Assembly (NCBI RefSeq): GCF_031769215.1
Contig: NW_026782390.1
Location: 248,001 to 312,000, forward strand
Direction: 5' to 3'
From: Ylistrum balloti
Lineage: Eukaryota
DNA length: 64,000 nucleotides
Part shown: positions 24,101 to 31,667 of the stretch, piece after piece
Numbering within the stretch: the first letter of the stretch is position 1
Layout: every line of letters starts with the position of its first letter
Translations under genes and position numbers: made by a program
The notes under the pieces: model-generated
Told to the model about the DNA's origin: nothing
Databases searched by the model: none
What the model saw: the letters and a program-made list of their open reading frames with translations, nothing else

Positions 24101-24412
24101 TCTTCCTTTCATCTGTTTTTTGTCGTTAAATGTGTATAGGTATCGTACAGGTAGGCTAAGTTAGGCTAGATGCAGGTGCGCGTCACTTATGCGTATTGTT
24201 TCCATTTCATGAGCACGAAATCATGTAGGGTATTTTGTTTGTATTAAATTGAATCTGTAATAGTAACATAGCAATAGTAAATTGAATTAAATGTAACTAG
24301 TAATATGTGAAGTTGTTGGAATAAAAGACAAATACAGTTAGCTTGAGCTAACATGTGCTTGGTAGACTATAATATTTTCTCATGGAATAGTGTTTTGCCA
24401 GCGTAAGGCAAT

Positions 24413-25653
24413 TGTAACGTAGGACGAGCGGCGAGAAGCTATCAGGAAAATGAAACACAATACCATTATAAAGATTAACAATTTATTTACAACATGAACG
24501 TAAACAAAGCACACTCACACATTCCCTCAGATTCACACAAAAGATTACACTTCAGTATTACACAAAGTCTCTGTTGATCACCCCTCAACGGTCCTTCACA
24601 CCAGGAATGAAAAGTTCAAGAAAACCCCCAAATACTGGATTCAATGGAGACAGAGGATTCCTATCCAGACAACTGACGAACTACTACCGCAGTAGTACTC
24701 TGGCGCTGTGCGTGCCACACAAAATCTCAAGCAGAGGAGAGCTCACAGCTATAGATGCCATATCTGTACCGCTATGCTCCTCGGAACGTGTACCCCAATG
24801 CCAAACCTGTAGTTCCCGTGATTGGCTGACCTTACTGTCTGCTAAGGCCCTGGTGCCGACTCTCACTGATAAAACCGTCGTGGCCTTGATGAGGTAGCTG
24901 GTGTCGTTGTGACCGGTGGGAAAAGCTTAAAAGAATAGTAACGAAGATTGACTCGCATACAACACTTGCACATTATTATGACACAATCAACTACTATTAT
25001 AAATGAAATTATCCCCAGAAATACTCATAAATTACACAGTACATGATACATTTCGAAGAGTTATAAAGGTAATAACATAATGAACGACTAATGCAGGCTC
25101 AGAATAACATAACGACCATCTAGCAAACAATGTATGAGACATTATACGGCAACTCACGGCTTCCATACTTTTTTCAAACACGCATACGTTTTCACCTGAG
25201 TATTCTATACGCTTATAAAATACATATAACTTATAATAACTGGAAGAAGTTATAGAAACAGCTGCAATAATAACATTCCTAGCAAATACTAAGATACAAT
25301 CTAAGAAAGGACACCCTAGTGTAGCCTTATACATAAAAACAACAATGCTACGCATGACTGAGCCGCACAAACAACGAGTGTTTATCAAAGATATTTATTA
25401 AGAAAAAGGCTAAGAAAGCAATAATGCGAAGAAAGAGATATTAAGATAGACTTACCACAGTCTGCAATCTGTGCCTGTATATTTTCCTTGTAGTGGTTAC
25501 ATCGGGTAAATAACCCGTAAACAACCCCTGCGGAATTCACGCGACCTCCATGAACTCCCACTCACCTGGTCACACGCACAAGTACGGTCGCTCGACAGGG
25601 ATAACGAAAATACCGAACGTAGACAACAACATATACATACATACGACGTGACA
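24413..25653 (-). repeat. 3' LTR (1241 bp)
   Basis: Direct repeat of 30422-31662 at offset 6009; 8 substitutions and no indels found by manual comparison (~99.4% identity). Confidence 0.98.
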
Positions 25654-25668
25654 AATATCCCCCCGTTT
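25654..25668 (-). other. Polypurine tract
   Basis: Minus strand AAACGGGGGGATATT directly precedes the 3' LTR start TGTCACG. Confidence 0.75.
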
Positions 25669-25716
25669 CGGAAAAAAGTGTTACACATTTTCTAAACACT
25701 TCGGAGTATGGATGGT

Positions 25717-26389
25717 TCAAAATCGGCTGAGGTAATCAGCACCAACATTGTTCACACCCTTTATCGCTCGGATACGGAATCTGTAGGGCTGAAGTAACAG
25801 CGCCCAACGCATTAATCTGGCGTTTGCTGTCCTGGATCTGTTGACATAAGTGAGTGGCTGATGGTCGGTTTCCAGTACAAACTCTCTTCCATACAAGTAT
25901 GGCTCAAATTTTTGGATCCCCCAGACTATTGCCAAACATTCCCTTTCCACTATGGCATAATTCCGTTCTCTAGGTAGGAGTTTCCTGCTCGCATAGGCAA
26001 CTGGCAACTTCTGATCTCCGTCCTCTTGCAGGAGAACAGCACCTAAACCAGTGTCGGAAGCATCCGTTCGAAGGATGAAGTCTTCTTCCATATCAGCGAG
26101 CTTCAGAACGGGTCCTGCTGTCAGCAACTTCTTCAAAGTATTGAATGCGATGTCATGACTTTCCTTCCACACGACTTTGTTGGGGTTACCCTTCTTAGTC
26201 AGGTCTGTCAAGGGAACGCTGATGGCGGCGAAGTTAGGAATAAACTTTCGATAAAATCCAGCCAATCCCAAGAACGATCGCACCTGCTTCTTGCTGGTTG
26301 GTGTAGGCGCTTCCGCAATTGCTTTCACTTTCGCCTGCTCCAGTTCTAGTCGTCCTAATCCGACCACATGCCCTAGACACGGTAAGCTT
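25717..26389 (-). CDS. pol: pol 3' part: RT thumb/connection and RNase H, out of frame with the main ORF
   Basis: SSLPCLGHVVG...VRSFLGLAGFYRKFIPNFA...FILRTDASDTGLGAVLLQ...ERECLAIVW...ETDHQPL...NVGADYLSR. Confidence 0.93.
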
Positions 26390-29300
26390 GAAAAAACACT
26401 TGTTTGGCTTAGCAGTCAACCCAGCCTCGCGCAGACGTGAAAACAGCTCCTTCAAAACGTCTAAGTGTTCTTCCCATGTGGAGGTGTAAATGAGAATATC
26501 ATCTATGAAATTATCAAGATGAGCCATTCCTGCCAATAACTTCCTCATCATGCGACTGAAAGTCGCAGGAGCGTTCACTAGTCCAAACGGCATGACACGG
26601 AACTGAAACAATCCCTGTGGCGTTGTGAATGCTGTCATGGGCTTTGCTTTCTCCGTCAACGGCACCTGCCAGTATCCTTTGCTTAGGTCGAGTTTCGAAA
26701 AGTAACGAGCACCCGCCAGTCTAGCAAAGATCTCCTCCGTATTCGGCATCGGTTCGGCGTCAAAGACTGTCACTCTGTTTAACTTCCTGAAGTCGATGCA
26801 GAAGCGGTTGGTGCCGTCCTTCTTTTTGACGATCACAACAGGTGCTGAATAAGGCGATGAAGAAGGCTCGATGACTCCCATTTTCAACATCTTGTCCACC
26901 TCTGCTGTTATGACTTCCGTGGTGTTGAATGGTATTGGATAAGGCTTAACACGCACCGGCTCAGGAGTTGTAGTCGTGATGTCATGTTCGATAAGGACTG
27001 TCCTTCCCGGTTGATCTGTAAGCACATCCTTATATCCCTCCAGTAAATCTTTCACCTCCCTTTTCTGTTCTTCAGGTAATTCCTGAGATATGCCTACATC
27101 CTGTATTCCCCCTTTTCCTCTGTCACACGGAAGAGTCTCTAACACGTGGCTAAGACCTTCTTCTTTACATTCTTCTTCCTCAATGACCATGGACAGGACA
27201 CAAGCCAGAACTCCTTCGGACGTCACTGCGTTTGAGTCTTCCCGGATCCTTTGTTCTTCATACTTCTTCAGAAGGTTGATGTGGAGTACCTTGATCTTTC
27301 CATCATGGTCAACACGATAGTCTGACGGACCCACCTTCTCAATCACGTCATAAGGTCCTCTCCACTGCAATAGAAGCTTGTTGGCCTTTGTCGGTAAGAG
27401 TACCAAAACCTTGTTACCCGCTTTCAGGTTTCTTTGTCTCGCTCTTCGGTTGAAGTGCCTCTTCTGTTTGACTTTTGCATCTTTAAGTTGCTCCGATGCC
27501 AGTCGACACGTTTCCTCCACTCTCTCTCGTAAATCTATCACGTACTGATAGATAGTTTTCACTTCCTCATCTGGAATATCCTTGGTCATCAGTTCTCTCA
27601 GAATCATCATAGGCCCTCTTACTGCTCTCCCGTACAGCAACTCAAAGGGTGAAAATCCAAGTGATTCTTGAGGAACCTCTCGATAGGCGAATAGCAGAGG
27701 GTTGATAAACCGATCCCAATCCTTCGGCCGTTCAGCAGTAATCTTGCGCAACATTTGCTTCAGGGTACCATTAAACCTCTCCACCAAGCCGTTGCACATG
27801 GGATGATACGGCGTAGTAGTCAGTTGTCTGATAGACAACAGCCGGCTTACCTCTCTCATCATCTCCGATGTAAACTGCGCCCCCTGGTCACTGAGCATCT
27901 CTGAAGGAATCCCTACTCGGCTGAACATATCGATGAGCGCCTCAGCTACTCTCTCCGTCTCAATGCTCTTCAGTGCGACTGCTTCGGGGTATCGAGTGGC
28001 ATAATCCACGACCGTCAAAATAAATCGGTTCCCTCGGTCTGTAGCCGGTTCCAGTGGTCCAATAAGATCCACAGCGATCCTCTTAAATGGAGTGTCAATA
28101 AGAGGCATGTCACCAAGTGGAGCCTTCGGCACCCTCCCCTTCGGAAATGTTCTCTGGCATATGTCGCAGGATCTACAAAACCGAATAACTTCCGCTTGAA
28201 TACCAGGCCAGAAGAACTCCGATAGAACTCTGTTGGTAGTCTTCTTAGCTGCCAAGTGTCCCGACATCATGGAGTCATGTGCCAATCTCATCACTATATC
28301 GCGATACTTTGCCGGAACAACCAGCTGACGAAAGGTCATACCATTTCTCACCCTTGGGCTATGGAACTTACGGTACATGATCCCTTTCTGATAAAAGATG
28401 GTGGAAGATCCTCCATCATCTCGCTCGTATATTTCTCCTTTAGCCGCCAGTTTCCTAAACTTCTTCAAAGACGGATCGTTCTGTTGCTCCTCCTTCAAAT
28501 CCACAACACTTCCAATGTCTGTAACAAGATCCAGCACCTTCAGTGGTTTGTATGGTTGATCCTTCTTCTTTGACTGCGCACGTGTCACCACCGCTTGAAC
28601 GTCAGGTTCCCTCATCTTCCGGTTCTGGTCAGGTTGGTTGGGAGGTAATGCTCCAGGAATGTTTCCAATGATAAGATCGTACAGTGGAGTCTCCAGAGCC
28701 CAGGCTTCGGTTGTTCCTTTGTAGTACGGGGAATCCACCTCCACTGTAACAACAGGTGTCTGTAATTTCGAACCATCGGCGAACGTACATACTTGAACTC
28801 TGTCTGTGAAACATCCTTCGTCAACGAGACATTTCCTTACCACAACACCGCTACATCCAGTGTCACGTAGCACCGTCACGCTGTGGTCCCCAATATATCC
28901 TTTCTTCACAGGCATGGCTGTAGGTTGAGAACTCCTCACATCACAAGACACACTCAAAGTCGCAGAATCTTTCTCTTGGCTGGATGACCCTGTTCTTGAC
29001 TTTCTTCCTTTATTCCTACACTCATCGCTATCCTTCTCTTTCCTATGCTGCTGGTCAACTAGAGCAGCAACCTTACTCCCAGAAGCATTCTTCTTGGCAC
29101 GGCATTCATAAGATATATGTCCAAGCTTACCACAGTTGTAGCATTTCTTATCCTTCGTTGGAGCTCTTGACACAGGCGCCTCAGTTGTTCCGGAACTATG
29201 TGGCTTACTAGTACCCGTCTTCTGGCCTTTAGAAATCACCTGGTTTGCCCTGGTTCCTCTTGCTTCCACGAACTGGTCTGCTAATCTCGCCATGTCGATG

Positions 29301-30055
29301 ATTGATGTTGGTGACCTCTCCTTCAGGAAAAGAGAAAGATCCTGTCCACAGCAGTGGATGAATTGGTCCCTCAGCATAAGATCTCTCAACTGTTCGTATG
29401 TCTTACCAGTCTTACTCAATTCCACCCAGCGTTCAACATAATTCTGTAAGCGTGAGGCAAACTGCGAGAATGTCTCTCCTCCTTCAGGTCTGGCTGTCCG
29501 GAATAATTTCCTGAAACCTTCTTCGGTCTTTTCGAACCTTTGCAAAAGTGCCTTCCCCAACTCCTCATAGTCTAAAGCCTTGTCAACCGGTAGACGCGAA
29601 AACACTTCCAGAGCTTTTCCCTTCAACAATGCACTGAGGTTCGCTCCCCACTGGCTATGTTCCCACTTCTGCGCCCTAGCATAGAGTTCAAACCTCTGGA
29701 GGTAGGCGTCCATATTATCTCGTGTCTCATCGAATGCTGGCAATTTCGGACCTCTTCGAACAGCAGTTTCCCTGTCGGAATGGACACTTGTGTTCTCGCC
29801 ACCTTCTGCTCGTAGGAGTTCCAATTTCCTCTGGTGTTCTTTCTCTTGCTGAACTTCCGCTCTCGCATCCCTCTCTGCTTCAAGCTTAGCCTGTTCCAGA
29901 ATGACGTTCTTCTGCTCTACTTCCATCCGAAAAGCACGTTCTTTCTCCCGTTCCTCTCTGGCTTGGGCTTGCTGATCTCGGACAAAGTCCTGTAACTGCT
30001 CCCCTTCATAGTGCAAGTCCTTTCCAAAAGCAATAAGTTCTTGCAATGTAGACAT
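26390..30055 (-). CDS. gag-pol: gag-pol polyprotein: SCAN-like capsid, CCHC knuckle, aspartic protease, integrase, RT. Frameshift near 26391-26396; the ORF-track frame then runs on to a stop at 26234
   Basis: Probable start MSTLQE at 30055; CYNCGKLGHISYEC; LRDTGCS; HDSMMSGH...CRSCDIC; VDLIGP / SDQGAQF / GLVERFNGTLK; WRGPY; RFCIDFRKLN; KLDLSKGYWQV; MPFGLVNAPATF; FIDDILI. Confidence 0.95.
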
Positions 30056-30056
30056 A

Positions 30057-30165
30057 CTGAAAAATAAATGAGCTACAAACACACCTGCCAAACAGATTCC
30101 AAATAACAAGACAACACAAATAACACAGGAAACAAAACAAGGAGACACCATGCATATATACTCAC
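30057..30165 (-). other. Putative leader intron B (109 nt) ending 1 nt before the gag ATG
   Basis: GTG|GTGAGT donor; T-rich body; CTCAT...TTTATTTTTCAG|TATGTCT acceptor. Splicing itself is inferred. Confidence 0.6.
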
Positions 30166-30237
30166 CACGGCTTGAGATCAGTCCACGTGCTGTTGTTCAT
30201 CTGGAATTTCCCCTGGTTGCTTACCTGTGCGATCCAT

Positions 30238-30344
30238 CTGAAACGTTCTTGTGACGAAAGAAAACGGATAAGAAACAAGAAAAGAGTAAAAGAGACGCAA
30301 ACAGAAACAGGTCAGAAAAATAAATATCTGATAAACTACCTCAC
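30238..30344 (-). other. Putative leader intron A (107 nt)
   Basis: CAG|GTGAGG donor; CTGAC branch consensus; ~60-nt polypyrimidine tract; TTTCAG|ATG acceptor. Confidence 0.55.
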
Positions 30345-30399
30345 CTGAAATACCTGTTTACAACCTTAAATTCAATTCCCAAATAGCAACACGTCAGTC

Positions 30400-30417
30400 A
30401 TCCCACCGCTGCCACCA
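30400..30417 (-). other. Primer-binding site complementary to tRNA-Leu (AAG/TAG type)
   Basis: Minus strand TGGTGGCAGCGGTGGGAT, 4 nt from the 5' LTR. The plus strand ATCCCACCGCTGCCACCA equals the conserved 3' end of metazoan tRNA-Leu(AAG/TAG) plus CCA (recalled, not searched). Confidence 0.9.
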
Positions 30418-30421
30418 ACTT

Positions 30422-31662
30422 TGTAACGTAGGACGAGCGGCGAGAAGCTATCAGGAAAATGAAACACAATACCACTATAAAAATTAACAATTTATTTACA
30501 ACATGAACGTAAACAAAGCACACTCACACATTCCCTCAGATTCACACAAAAGATTACACTTCAGTATTACACAAAGTCTCTGTTGATCACCCCTCAACGG
30601 TCCTTCACACCAGGAATGAAAAGTTCAAGAAAACCCCCAAATACTGGATTCAATGGAGACAGAGGATTCCTATCCAGACAACTGACGAACTACTACCGCA
30701 GTAGTACTTTGGCGCTGTGCGTGCCACACAAAATCTCAAGCAGAGTAGAGCTCACAGTTATAGATGCCATATCTGTACCGCTATGCTCCTCGGAACGTGT
30801 ACCCCAATGCCAAACCTGTAGTTTCCGTGATTGGCTGACCTTACTGTCTGCTAAGGCCCTGGTGCCGACTCTCACTGATAAAACCGTCGTGGCCTTGATG
30901 AGGTAGCTGGTGTCGTTGTGACCGGTGGGAAAAGCTTAAAAGAATAGTAACGAAGATTGACTCGCATACAACACTTGCACATTATTATGACACAATCAAC
31001 TACTATTATAAATGAAATTATCCCCAGAAATACTCATAAATTACACAGTACATGATACATTTCGAAGAGTTATAAAGGTAATAACATAATGAACGACTAA
31101 TGCAGGCTCAGAATAACATAACGACCATCTAGCAAACAATGTATGAGACATTATACGGCAACTCACGGCTTCCATACTTTTTTCAAACACGCATACGTTC
31201 TCACCTGAGTATTCTATACGCTTATAAAATACATATAACTTATAATAACTGGAAGAAGTTATAGAAACAGCTGCAATAATAACATTCCTAGCAAATACTA
31301 AGATACAATCTAAGAAAGGACACCCTAGTGTAGCCTTATACATAAAAACAACAATGCTACGCATGACTGAGCCGCACAAACAACGAGTGTTTATCAAAGA
31401 TATTTATTAAGAAAAAGGCTAAGAAAGCAATAATGCGAAGAAAGAGATATTAAGATAGACTTACCACAGTCTGCAATCTGTGCCTGTATATTTTCCTTGT
31501 AGTGGTTACATCGGGTAAATAACCCGTAAACAACCCCTGCGGAATTCACGCGACCTCCATGAACTCCCACTCACCTGGTCACACGCACAAGTACGGTCGC
31601 TCGACAGGGATAACGAAAATACCGAACGTAGAAAACAACATATACATACATACGACGTGACA
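30422..31662 (-). repeat. 5' LTR (1241 bp)
   Basis: Minus strand TGTCACG...CGTTACA; followed by the PBS. Confidence 0.98.
30491..30834 (-). promoter_or_regulatory. Candidate LTR promoter and poly(A) signal: CCAAT (30834-30830), TATAA (30762-30758), AATAAA (30496-30491)
   Basis: Motifs occur in the expected order on the element sense strand, implying a long U3 (~930 nt) and a short U5. Confidence 0.5.
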
Positions 31663-31667
31663 GCAAT

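Follow-up and report, generated by a model that had tools for sequence, protein, structure and literature searches.

Candidate spliceosomal signals between the primer binding site and gag of a Gmr1-type LTR retrotransposon in the scallop Ylistrum balloti

In LTR retrotransposons and retroviruses one transcript must serve both as message and as genome. The known solutions are a leader donor joined to env-type acceptors in retroviruses, gag-only messages in copia and BARE1, and separate promoters in BARE. Env-type, gag-only and pol-internal introns are already known from the splicing of LTR elements. In the retroviral leader, the sequence downstream of the donor is unique to unspliced RNA and aids selective packaging (PMC5035971). 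In BARE1 and copia, LTR elements with a single reading frame, splicing generates a translation-only message, the unspliced RNA is replicated, and no DNA copies of the spliced form occur in the genome (PMC3735527). Penelope harbors a 75-bp intron 46 bp after the transcription start, which is kept in genomic copies and spliced from most transcripts; its splice sites are conserved between species, and its deletion abolishes reporter expression without lowering RNA levels (PMC2377424). For Diaspora, a Ty3/gypsy element of soybean, predictions placed donors ahead of gag and acceptors so that they flank its start codon. In human L1, splicing within the 5' UTR leaves intron-less genomic copies. The leader of the snakehead fish retrovirus is reportedly spliced to a position just upstream of gag. 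A literature search returned no report of leader introns upstream of gag for Gmr1-type elements, and no later report following the Diaspora-type predictions.

The leader of an LTR retrotransposon from the scallop Ylistrum balloti resembles these systems in part. Like the major donor of HIV-1 or MLV type, it presents a consensus donor between primer site and gag, and in retroviruses the unspliced RNA is the genome. Unlike retroviruses, in which the acceptor lies before env or accessory genes, the scallop element has its candidate acceptor at the gag start codon, lacks env and contains two tandem donors. Splicing therefore removes gag-pol in retroviruses, whereas a spliced scallop RNA would still encode it. 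The closest functional precedent is the 5' intron of Penelope, a retained leader intron that acts after transcription. Penelope differs in that it does not belong to the LTR elements, lacks gag, a primer binding site and a virus-like particle, and integrates by a different route. The BARE1 and copia introns are located after gag inside the coding region and give a gag-only message, whereas the scallop candidates are wholly non-coding and lie upstream of gag. The Diaspora sites were predicted with medium confidence, lie inside the LTR of a single plant family and lack support from comparison. The snakehead virus is a vertebrate retrovirus and serves as a lead only, and L1, unlike the scallop element, is a non-LTR element.

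The scallop element is located on the minus strand of the window, by which the whole analyzed stretch of 64,000 nucleotides is meant. Its main features are as follows.

24413-31662, minus strand: complete LTR retrotransposon (LTR pair, target duplication, primer site and pol domains)
30422-31662, minus strand: 5' LTR, 1241 bp, TG..CA (comparison with 24413-25653 at offset 6009)
30491-30496, minus strand: AATAAA poly(A) hexamer close to the LTR end, about 75 nt before the primer site (sequence)
30400-30417, minus strand: primer binding site, 18 nt, exact complement of the 3' end of host tRNA-Leu (anticodon TAG) plus CCA
26234-30055, minus strand: gag-protease-integrase-RT reading frame, 1273 codons from the gag ATG (Pfam matches)
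25717-26367, minus strand: RNase H part of pol, in a different frame (Pfam RT_RNaseH and RT_RNaseH_2)
25658-25669, minus strand: polypurine tract adjoining the 3' LTR upstream (sequence reading)
24413-25653, minus strand: 3' LTR, 1241 bp (same offset-6009 comparison)

Direct comparison of both LTRs revealed 8 mismatches in 1241 bp, and the element is flanked by a 5-bp target-site duplication, GCAAT (24408-24412 and 31663-31667). The element is young in this genome. The primer site starts two bases past the 5' LTR, and the host tRNA-Leu(TAG) genes end in the complementary 15-mer. Pfam matches in the gag-pol frame comprise a SCAN-like capsid domain (residues 179-267), a CCHC motif (303-319), an integrase (Integrase_H2C2 and rve, 580-932) and RVT_1 (1076-1224). 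This order, with the integrase before the RT, assigns the element to the Gmr1-type Ty3/gypsy LTR retrotransposons and supports the classification given in the earlier note. Protein relatives were found in scallops, oysters, echinoderms and lancelets, and a scan of viral contigs returned zero relatives. In this copy a break interrupts the frame of pol between its RT and RNase H parts (window 26234-26400). A DNA contig of another individual (run X1) shows an indel difference near 26395, so that the break may be private to this copy.

Two further strong donor-like sites, CAG/GTGAGT and CAG/GTGAGA (slashes mark exon-intron boundaries), occur in the LTR, probably in U3, at 31574 and 31204 and are repeated in the 3' LTR; they may be relevant to read-through or chimeric transcripts. 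Elsewhere in the genome, single families give repeated Gag matches along one contig with a spacing of about one element length (5.4-6.4 kb), namely on contigs C895 (2402, 8176, 13565 and 19630), C390, C15 and C275 of genome G000, and at 12.9 kb, about two element lengths, on contig C622. This suggests head-to-tail arrays of elements with common LTRs. About ten matches to the tRNA-Leu 3' end on one strand, spaced by 1-2.5 kb (G000:C82:215093-228675), are probably a tRNA gene cluster.

The leader is 362 nt long and contains two T-rich intervals, each closing in YAG. It is divided as follows.

30345-30399, minus strand: tail of leader exon 1 with the conserved block after the primer site (alignment identity and alignment fold)
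30238-30344, minus strand: candidate intron 1, 107 nt, donor CAG/GTGAGG, 50% T, acceptor tttcag (splice-site score, composition)
30166-30237, minus strand: candidate internal non-coding exon, 72 nt, 15% T (sequence, composition)
30057-30165, minus strand: candidate intron 2, 109 nt, donor GTG/GTGAGT, 51% T, acceptor tttttcag (splice-site score, composition)
30149-30151, minus strand: upstream ATG within candidate intron 2, in frame with gag (gag frame open upstream through the interval)

Donors were scored with a generic 5' splice-site matrix, which is a heuristic only, at a cut-off of 9.5 bits. Donor 1 (30345/30344) reaches 12.4 bits, donor b (30166/30165) 9.8 bits, and an alternative donor a inside the middle exon, CAG/GTAAGC at 30225/30224, 11.9 bits. 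The T fraction changes from 0.50 in interval 1 to 0.15 in the middle exon, 0.51 in interval 2 and 0.18 in gag, and these steps fall exactly on the GT/AG boundaries. Pyrimidines occupy 15 of the 20 positions before acceptor 2 and 12 of 20 before acceptor 1. Candidate intron 2 includes an AG-free stretch of 80 nt, followed by three YAGs, the last of which ends at 30057; a single base (30056) separates it from the gag ATG at 30055. An ATG opens the middle exon and starts a 19-codon upstream reading frame, MDRTGKQPGEIPDEQQHVD (30237-30178, stop at 30180-30178), and a second ATG of this exon lies at 30200. By hand counting, which was used for all frames across the candidate junctions, splicing of donor 30165 to acceptor 30057 would bring this second ATG into the gag frame. 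Most of this layout had been described in the earlier note: its donor-acceptor pairs 30344 with 30238 and 30165 with 30057 and its extra donor at 30224 were confirmed to the base on the minus strand, as were the 72-nt exon with its upstream frame and alternative donor, and the acceptor one nucleotide ahead of gag. Its introns of about 108 nt correspond to the 107 and 109 nt measured. It had also credited intron 1 with a branch consensus; here donor and acceptor hold, but the branch-like CTGAC (30295-30291) is a loose match, only 33 nt from donor 1 and 53 nt from acceptor 1. A CTCAT 12 nt before acceptor 2 is likewise a loose match. In both the window's family and the distant family H (leader L054), the last leader donor is followed at 10-15 nt by a palindrome, ATGCAT (window 30145-30160), which could be a dimer-contact motif or chance.

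On unspliced RNA five ATGs precede that of gag, and the one at 30151, which is absent from the earlier note, would add a hydrophobic extension of 32 residues to Gag. The T-rich stretch might be coding and provide a signal-peptide-like extension, an isoform similar to glyco-Gag. The frame is open from 30151, the protein model of a Pecten maximus relative reads through a T-rich stretch and acquires a similar extension of 33 residues, and 39 of 185 predicted proteins of relatives carry hydrophobic N-terminal extensions of 12-60 residues. Extended proteins include P0002, P0123, P0126, P0143 and P0153, from scallops, oysters and other invertebrates. However, 128 of the 185 start at the conserved Met, as does the database model for the window's own family (MSTLQ), and the sibling families of the same genome have no open in-frame extension. 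Four ATGs lie ahead of 30151 on unspliced RNA. Moreover, T-rich sequence yields hydrophobic residues in any open frame, and from composition about a fifth of such stretches are estimated to be open by chance. The extensions are probably read-through of T-rich leader DNA and not a signal peptide, and a coding function of the interval is considered extremely improbable.

The density of donor sites was compared with several controls. Within the 347 nt past the primer site, four sites of at least 9.5 bits were located, compared to a mean of 0.106 in dinucleotide shuffles, and none of 500 shuffles reached four. The same matrix identified no such site on the antisense strand of the leader and two in the 4336-nt coding region. 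Distant Gmr1-like families of the same genome, with Gag proteins only 26-40% identical, show 0-1 strong donors per 900 nt upstream. A scan of metagenome contigs retrieved 80 relatives, 48 of them with a gag start and upstream sequence, and 41 of these 48 have no strong donor in the 450 nt upstream. Six host introns inferred in chaperonin genes, a small sample, resemble the leader sites in their GTRNGT donors and T-rich YAG acceptors; with 163-450 nt they are longer than the leader intervals.

The four copies of the window's family (A) are near-identical and too alike to inform on conservation. Sibling families were therefore collected by a Gag search, and the leaders of about 20 families, from primer site to gag ATG, were obtained, all with the identical tRNA-Leu site. 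In families A, B, E, E2, R, S, T, F and G, a pair of consensus donors (GTAAGT or GTGAGT) is present with a spacing of 40-60 nt; the paired donors of this A-G group all score at least 9.8 bits and lie 65-170 nt before the gag ATG. Family Q has donors of 9.8 bits at -181 and 12.6 bits at -68, and with Q included all of these families reach the cut-off of 9.5 bits with two or more donors within 65-181 nt before gag. One or more consensus donors were located in families P, Q, H, K, O and U, and in family K no AG is available ahead of gag. From the last donor to the gag ATG the sequence is about 47-57% T across families, compared to 15-33% in the 60 nt before the donor. Few AGs occur in this stretch, which in nearly every family closes with a T-rich YAG at 1-45 nt from the ATG, and in the B group the acceptor follows donor b by only 37-45 nt.

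In an alignment of eight distinct families, mean pairwise identity per block was calculated; it averages 0.35 over the leader, and the 95th percentile of windows is 0.66. The blocks of donor a (30224) and donor b (30165) both exceed this percentile, with 0.72 and 0.68, and the two donors occupy homologous columns in families whose Gag proteins are only 55-65% identical. The sole leader block that is kept better than the donors is the one after the primer site (9-mers, 0.75-0.77). The acceptors are not conserved in position (block identities 0.39 and 0.09). The block of donor 1 has an identity of 0.61; at the homologous place the siblings harbor a weak TAG/GTTAGR of 3-6 bits, a strong donor for candidate intron 1 occurs only in the window's family, and the position of acceptor 1 is not conserved either. 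These data support constraint on the splice-like signals. The comparison among siblings supports candidate intron 2 best. The downstream module of donors 30224 and 30165 and acceptor 30057 is probably a selected set of splice signals that is used in part of the transcripts, and candidate intron 1 is somewhat doubtful, with the balance tilting slightly against it. Of the two leader introns proposed in the earlier note, the first is thus weaker than had been assumed, its strong donor being specific to one family, while constraint is seen on the downstream donors. In the comparison of splice sites with intron bodies that it suggested, donors a and b are conserved above the leader average, and the acceptors are not conserved in position.

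Chance motifs without function in a T-rich leader would be in line with the poor positional conservation of the acceptors. This explanation is disfavored, as the shuffles never reach the observed count, the antisense strand is devoid of sites, the donors recur at homologous columns across the families and the control families, both the distant Gmr1-like ones and the metagenome relatives, are nearly empty. It is regarded as very improbable.

Two other origins of the donor conservation were rejected. For RNA structure, the fold of the leader yields z = 0.08 and the alignment fold displays nothing conserved at the donors; for secondary contacts with the tRNA primer, the donors lack complementarity to it. 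Neither this z value nor the alignment fold points to excess or conserved structure that would mark a packaging signal in the leader or the intervals, which neither shows nor excludes such a signal. The 3' half of the primer site can form base pairs with the best-conserved part of the leader, the block directly behind it (GACTGACGTGT and its relatives; window 30385-30417, minus strand), and a small hairpin is kept there in the alignment fold. Families B, E, F and G (leaders L020, L028, L042 and L046) share another conserved block, TAGATTGCTTGAC, about 60-90 nt downstream of the primer site, with CTGAC in the window (30291-30330). Both the weak GTTAG donor-like site and a TTGAC that resembles a branch point overlap with this block.

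Among elements with the Leu primer site, leader length falls into two classes, long (260-442 nt) and short (96-144 nt). Nearly all long leaders carry the donor module, with only weaker donors in V (307 nt), whereas the short leaders of J, L and N (96, 108 and 141 nt) have no donor. The leader of M (234 nt) has a weak donor only. The expectation that sibling families share the GT/AG sites holds for most families with long leaders and fails for J, L and N. Among the metagenome relatives, three possess the tRNA-Leu site. L108 and L131 have short leaders (114 and 144 nt) without a donor, and L111 has the same primer site, a leader of 270 nt, AAG/GTGAGT at -99 and, as in the window, a TAG one base before the ATG. 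Taken together, the surveys of genome and metagenomes indicate that elements with this primer site either have the whole module or lack it, with leader length changing accordingly. The existence of short-leader families without it shows that the module is dispensable. The gag tree, which is distorted by two degenerate rows, is compatible with loss or gain of the module, and when exact intron loss was looked for, the short leaders did not align with the long ones. A Gmr1-like element of an unrelated host, on metagenome contigs L139 and L140 and without the Leu primer site, likewise shows consensus donors in tandem, at 90 and 59 nt from gag, and no clear T-rich tract.

All 23 genomic copies examined, 4 of family A, 14 of G and 5 of B, keep both intervals, and searches of the whole genome with the unspliced leaders of these families detected no intron-less retro-copy. 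In run X1, the sole public run located, which is DNA, the LTR has a depth of 185 compared to 53 for the internal region, and the contig is unspliced from 25690 to 30414 with no joint in the leader. The intact intervals of the 23 copies fit copying from unspliced RNA only; they are equally expected if no splicing takes place.

They would also fit donors that are binding sites of U1 snRNP with little or no use in splicing. Such sites might instead keep the 5' LTR poly(A) signal silent, or otherwise stabilize or retain full-length RNA, with the T-rich tract and its AGs being incidental. Such a role in poly(A) silencing and full-length RNA has been assigned to U1 binding at the major splice donor of HIV-1. 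In agreement with this possibility, the conserved blocks are donors and not acceptors, donors persist in family K although it has no usable acceptor before gag, no intron-less copies occur in families A, G and B, and the AATAAA, about 150 nt ahead of the first donor, is accompanied by a GT-rich downstream element. At 75-91 nt before the primer site, 16 of the 20 families compared have a poly(A) hexamer. It was identified in 15 of the 17 families with longer leaders (none in M and V) and in two of the three with short leaders (none found in J), and the signal does not differ consistently between families with and without donors. L and N have the hexamer at the same place but no donors, which indicates that donors are not needed for this poly(A) arrangement and weakens the idea without removing it. 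The intron-like composition between donor and ATG, with T-rich YAG ends in nearly every family, and the presence or absence of the whole module as one unit also speak against unspliced U1 sites. In general, animal nuclei can be expected to splice, at some rate, a consensus donor that is followed about 100 nt further on by TTTTTCAG. Unspliced U1 sites are therefore judged an unlikely explanation of the leader.

Alternatively, the leader donors might be major donors for a subgenomic message with an acceptor far downstream, for example ahead of pol or close to the 3' end. Retroviruses, pol of foamy viruses and the gag messages of copia-type elements offer parallels. Leader donors have this function in retroviruses and in insect elements that bear env (PMC12992720). 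The scallop element has a single gag-pol frame without a frameshift site, so its Gag:Pol ratio needs some other control, which a subgenomic message could provide. However, a survey of reading frames and Pfam domains detected no env-like gene and no extra reading frame in the element, and it is the gag ATG that the T-rich YAG adjoins in nearly every family. A distant acceptor as the main partner of these donors is thus very unlikely.

The leader is best explained as carrying a real, selected set of spliceosomal signals, as judged from their sequence and its comparison among families. Splicing in part of the transcripts would remove a U-rich segment laden with upstream ATGs and would set an exon junction just ahead of gag, which may give a well-exported and well-translated gag-pol message. 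The tandem donors would allow alternative products with or without short upstream reading frames. Packaging and reverse transcription would draw on the unspliced RNA, and every genomic copy would keep the intervals for this reason. Such a division between packaged and translated RNA, as proposed in the earlier note, is inferred by analogy with retroviruses, BARE1 (PMC3735527) and the 5' intron of Penelope (PMC2377424). The explanation as a whole, with selected leader signals, splicing of part of the transcripts and packaging of unspliced RNA, is slightly favored. More tentatively, and with the odds rather against it, a bivalve clade of Gmr1-type elements might possess true leader introns, in which tandem donors choose between upstream reading frames, splicing marks RNA for export and translation, only unspliced RNA is packaged, and sister families have lost or acquired the intron as a whole.

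The families concerned are young and multi-copy and have natural intron-less sister families in the same genome, which makes the case directly testable. If true, this would be the first true leader intron of such a kind for an LTR retrotransposon. A leader-only intron that ends at the start of gag would represent a further solution to the double use of one transcript as message and genome, in which the coding capacity is kept and only the fate of the RNA is changed.
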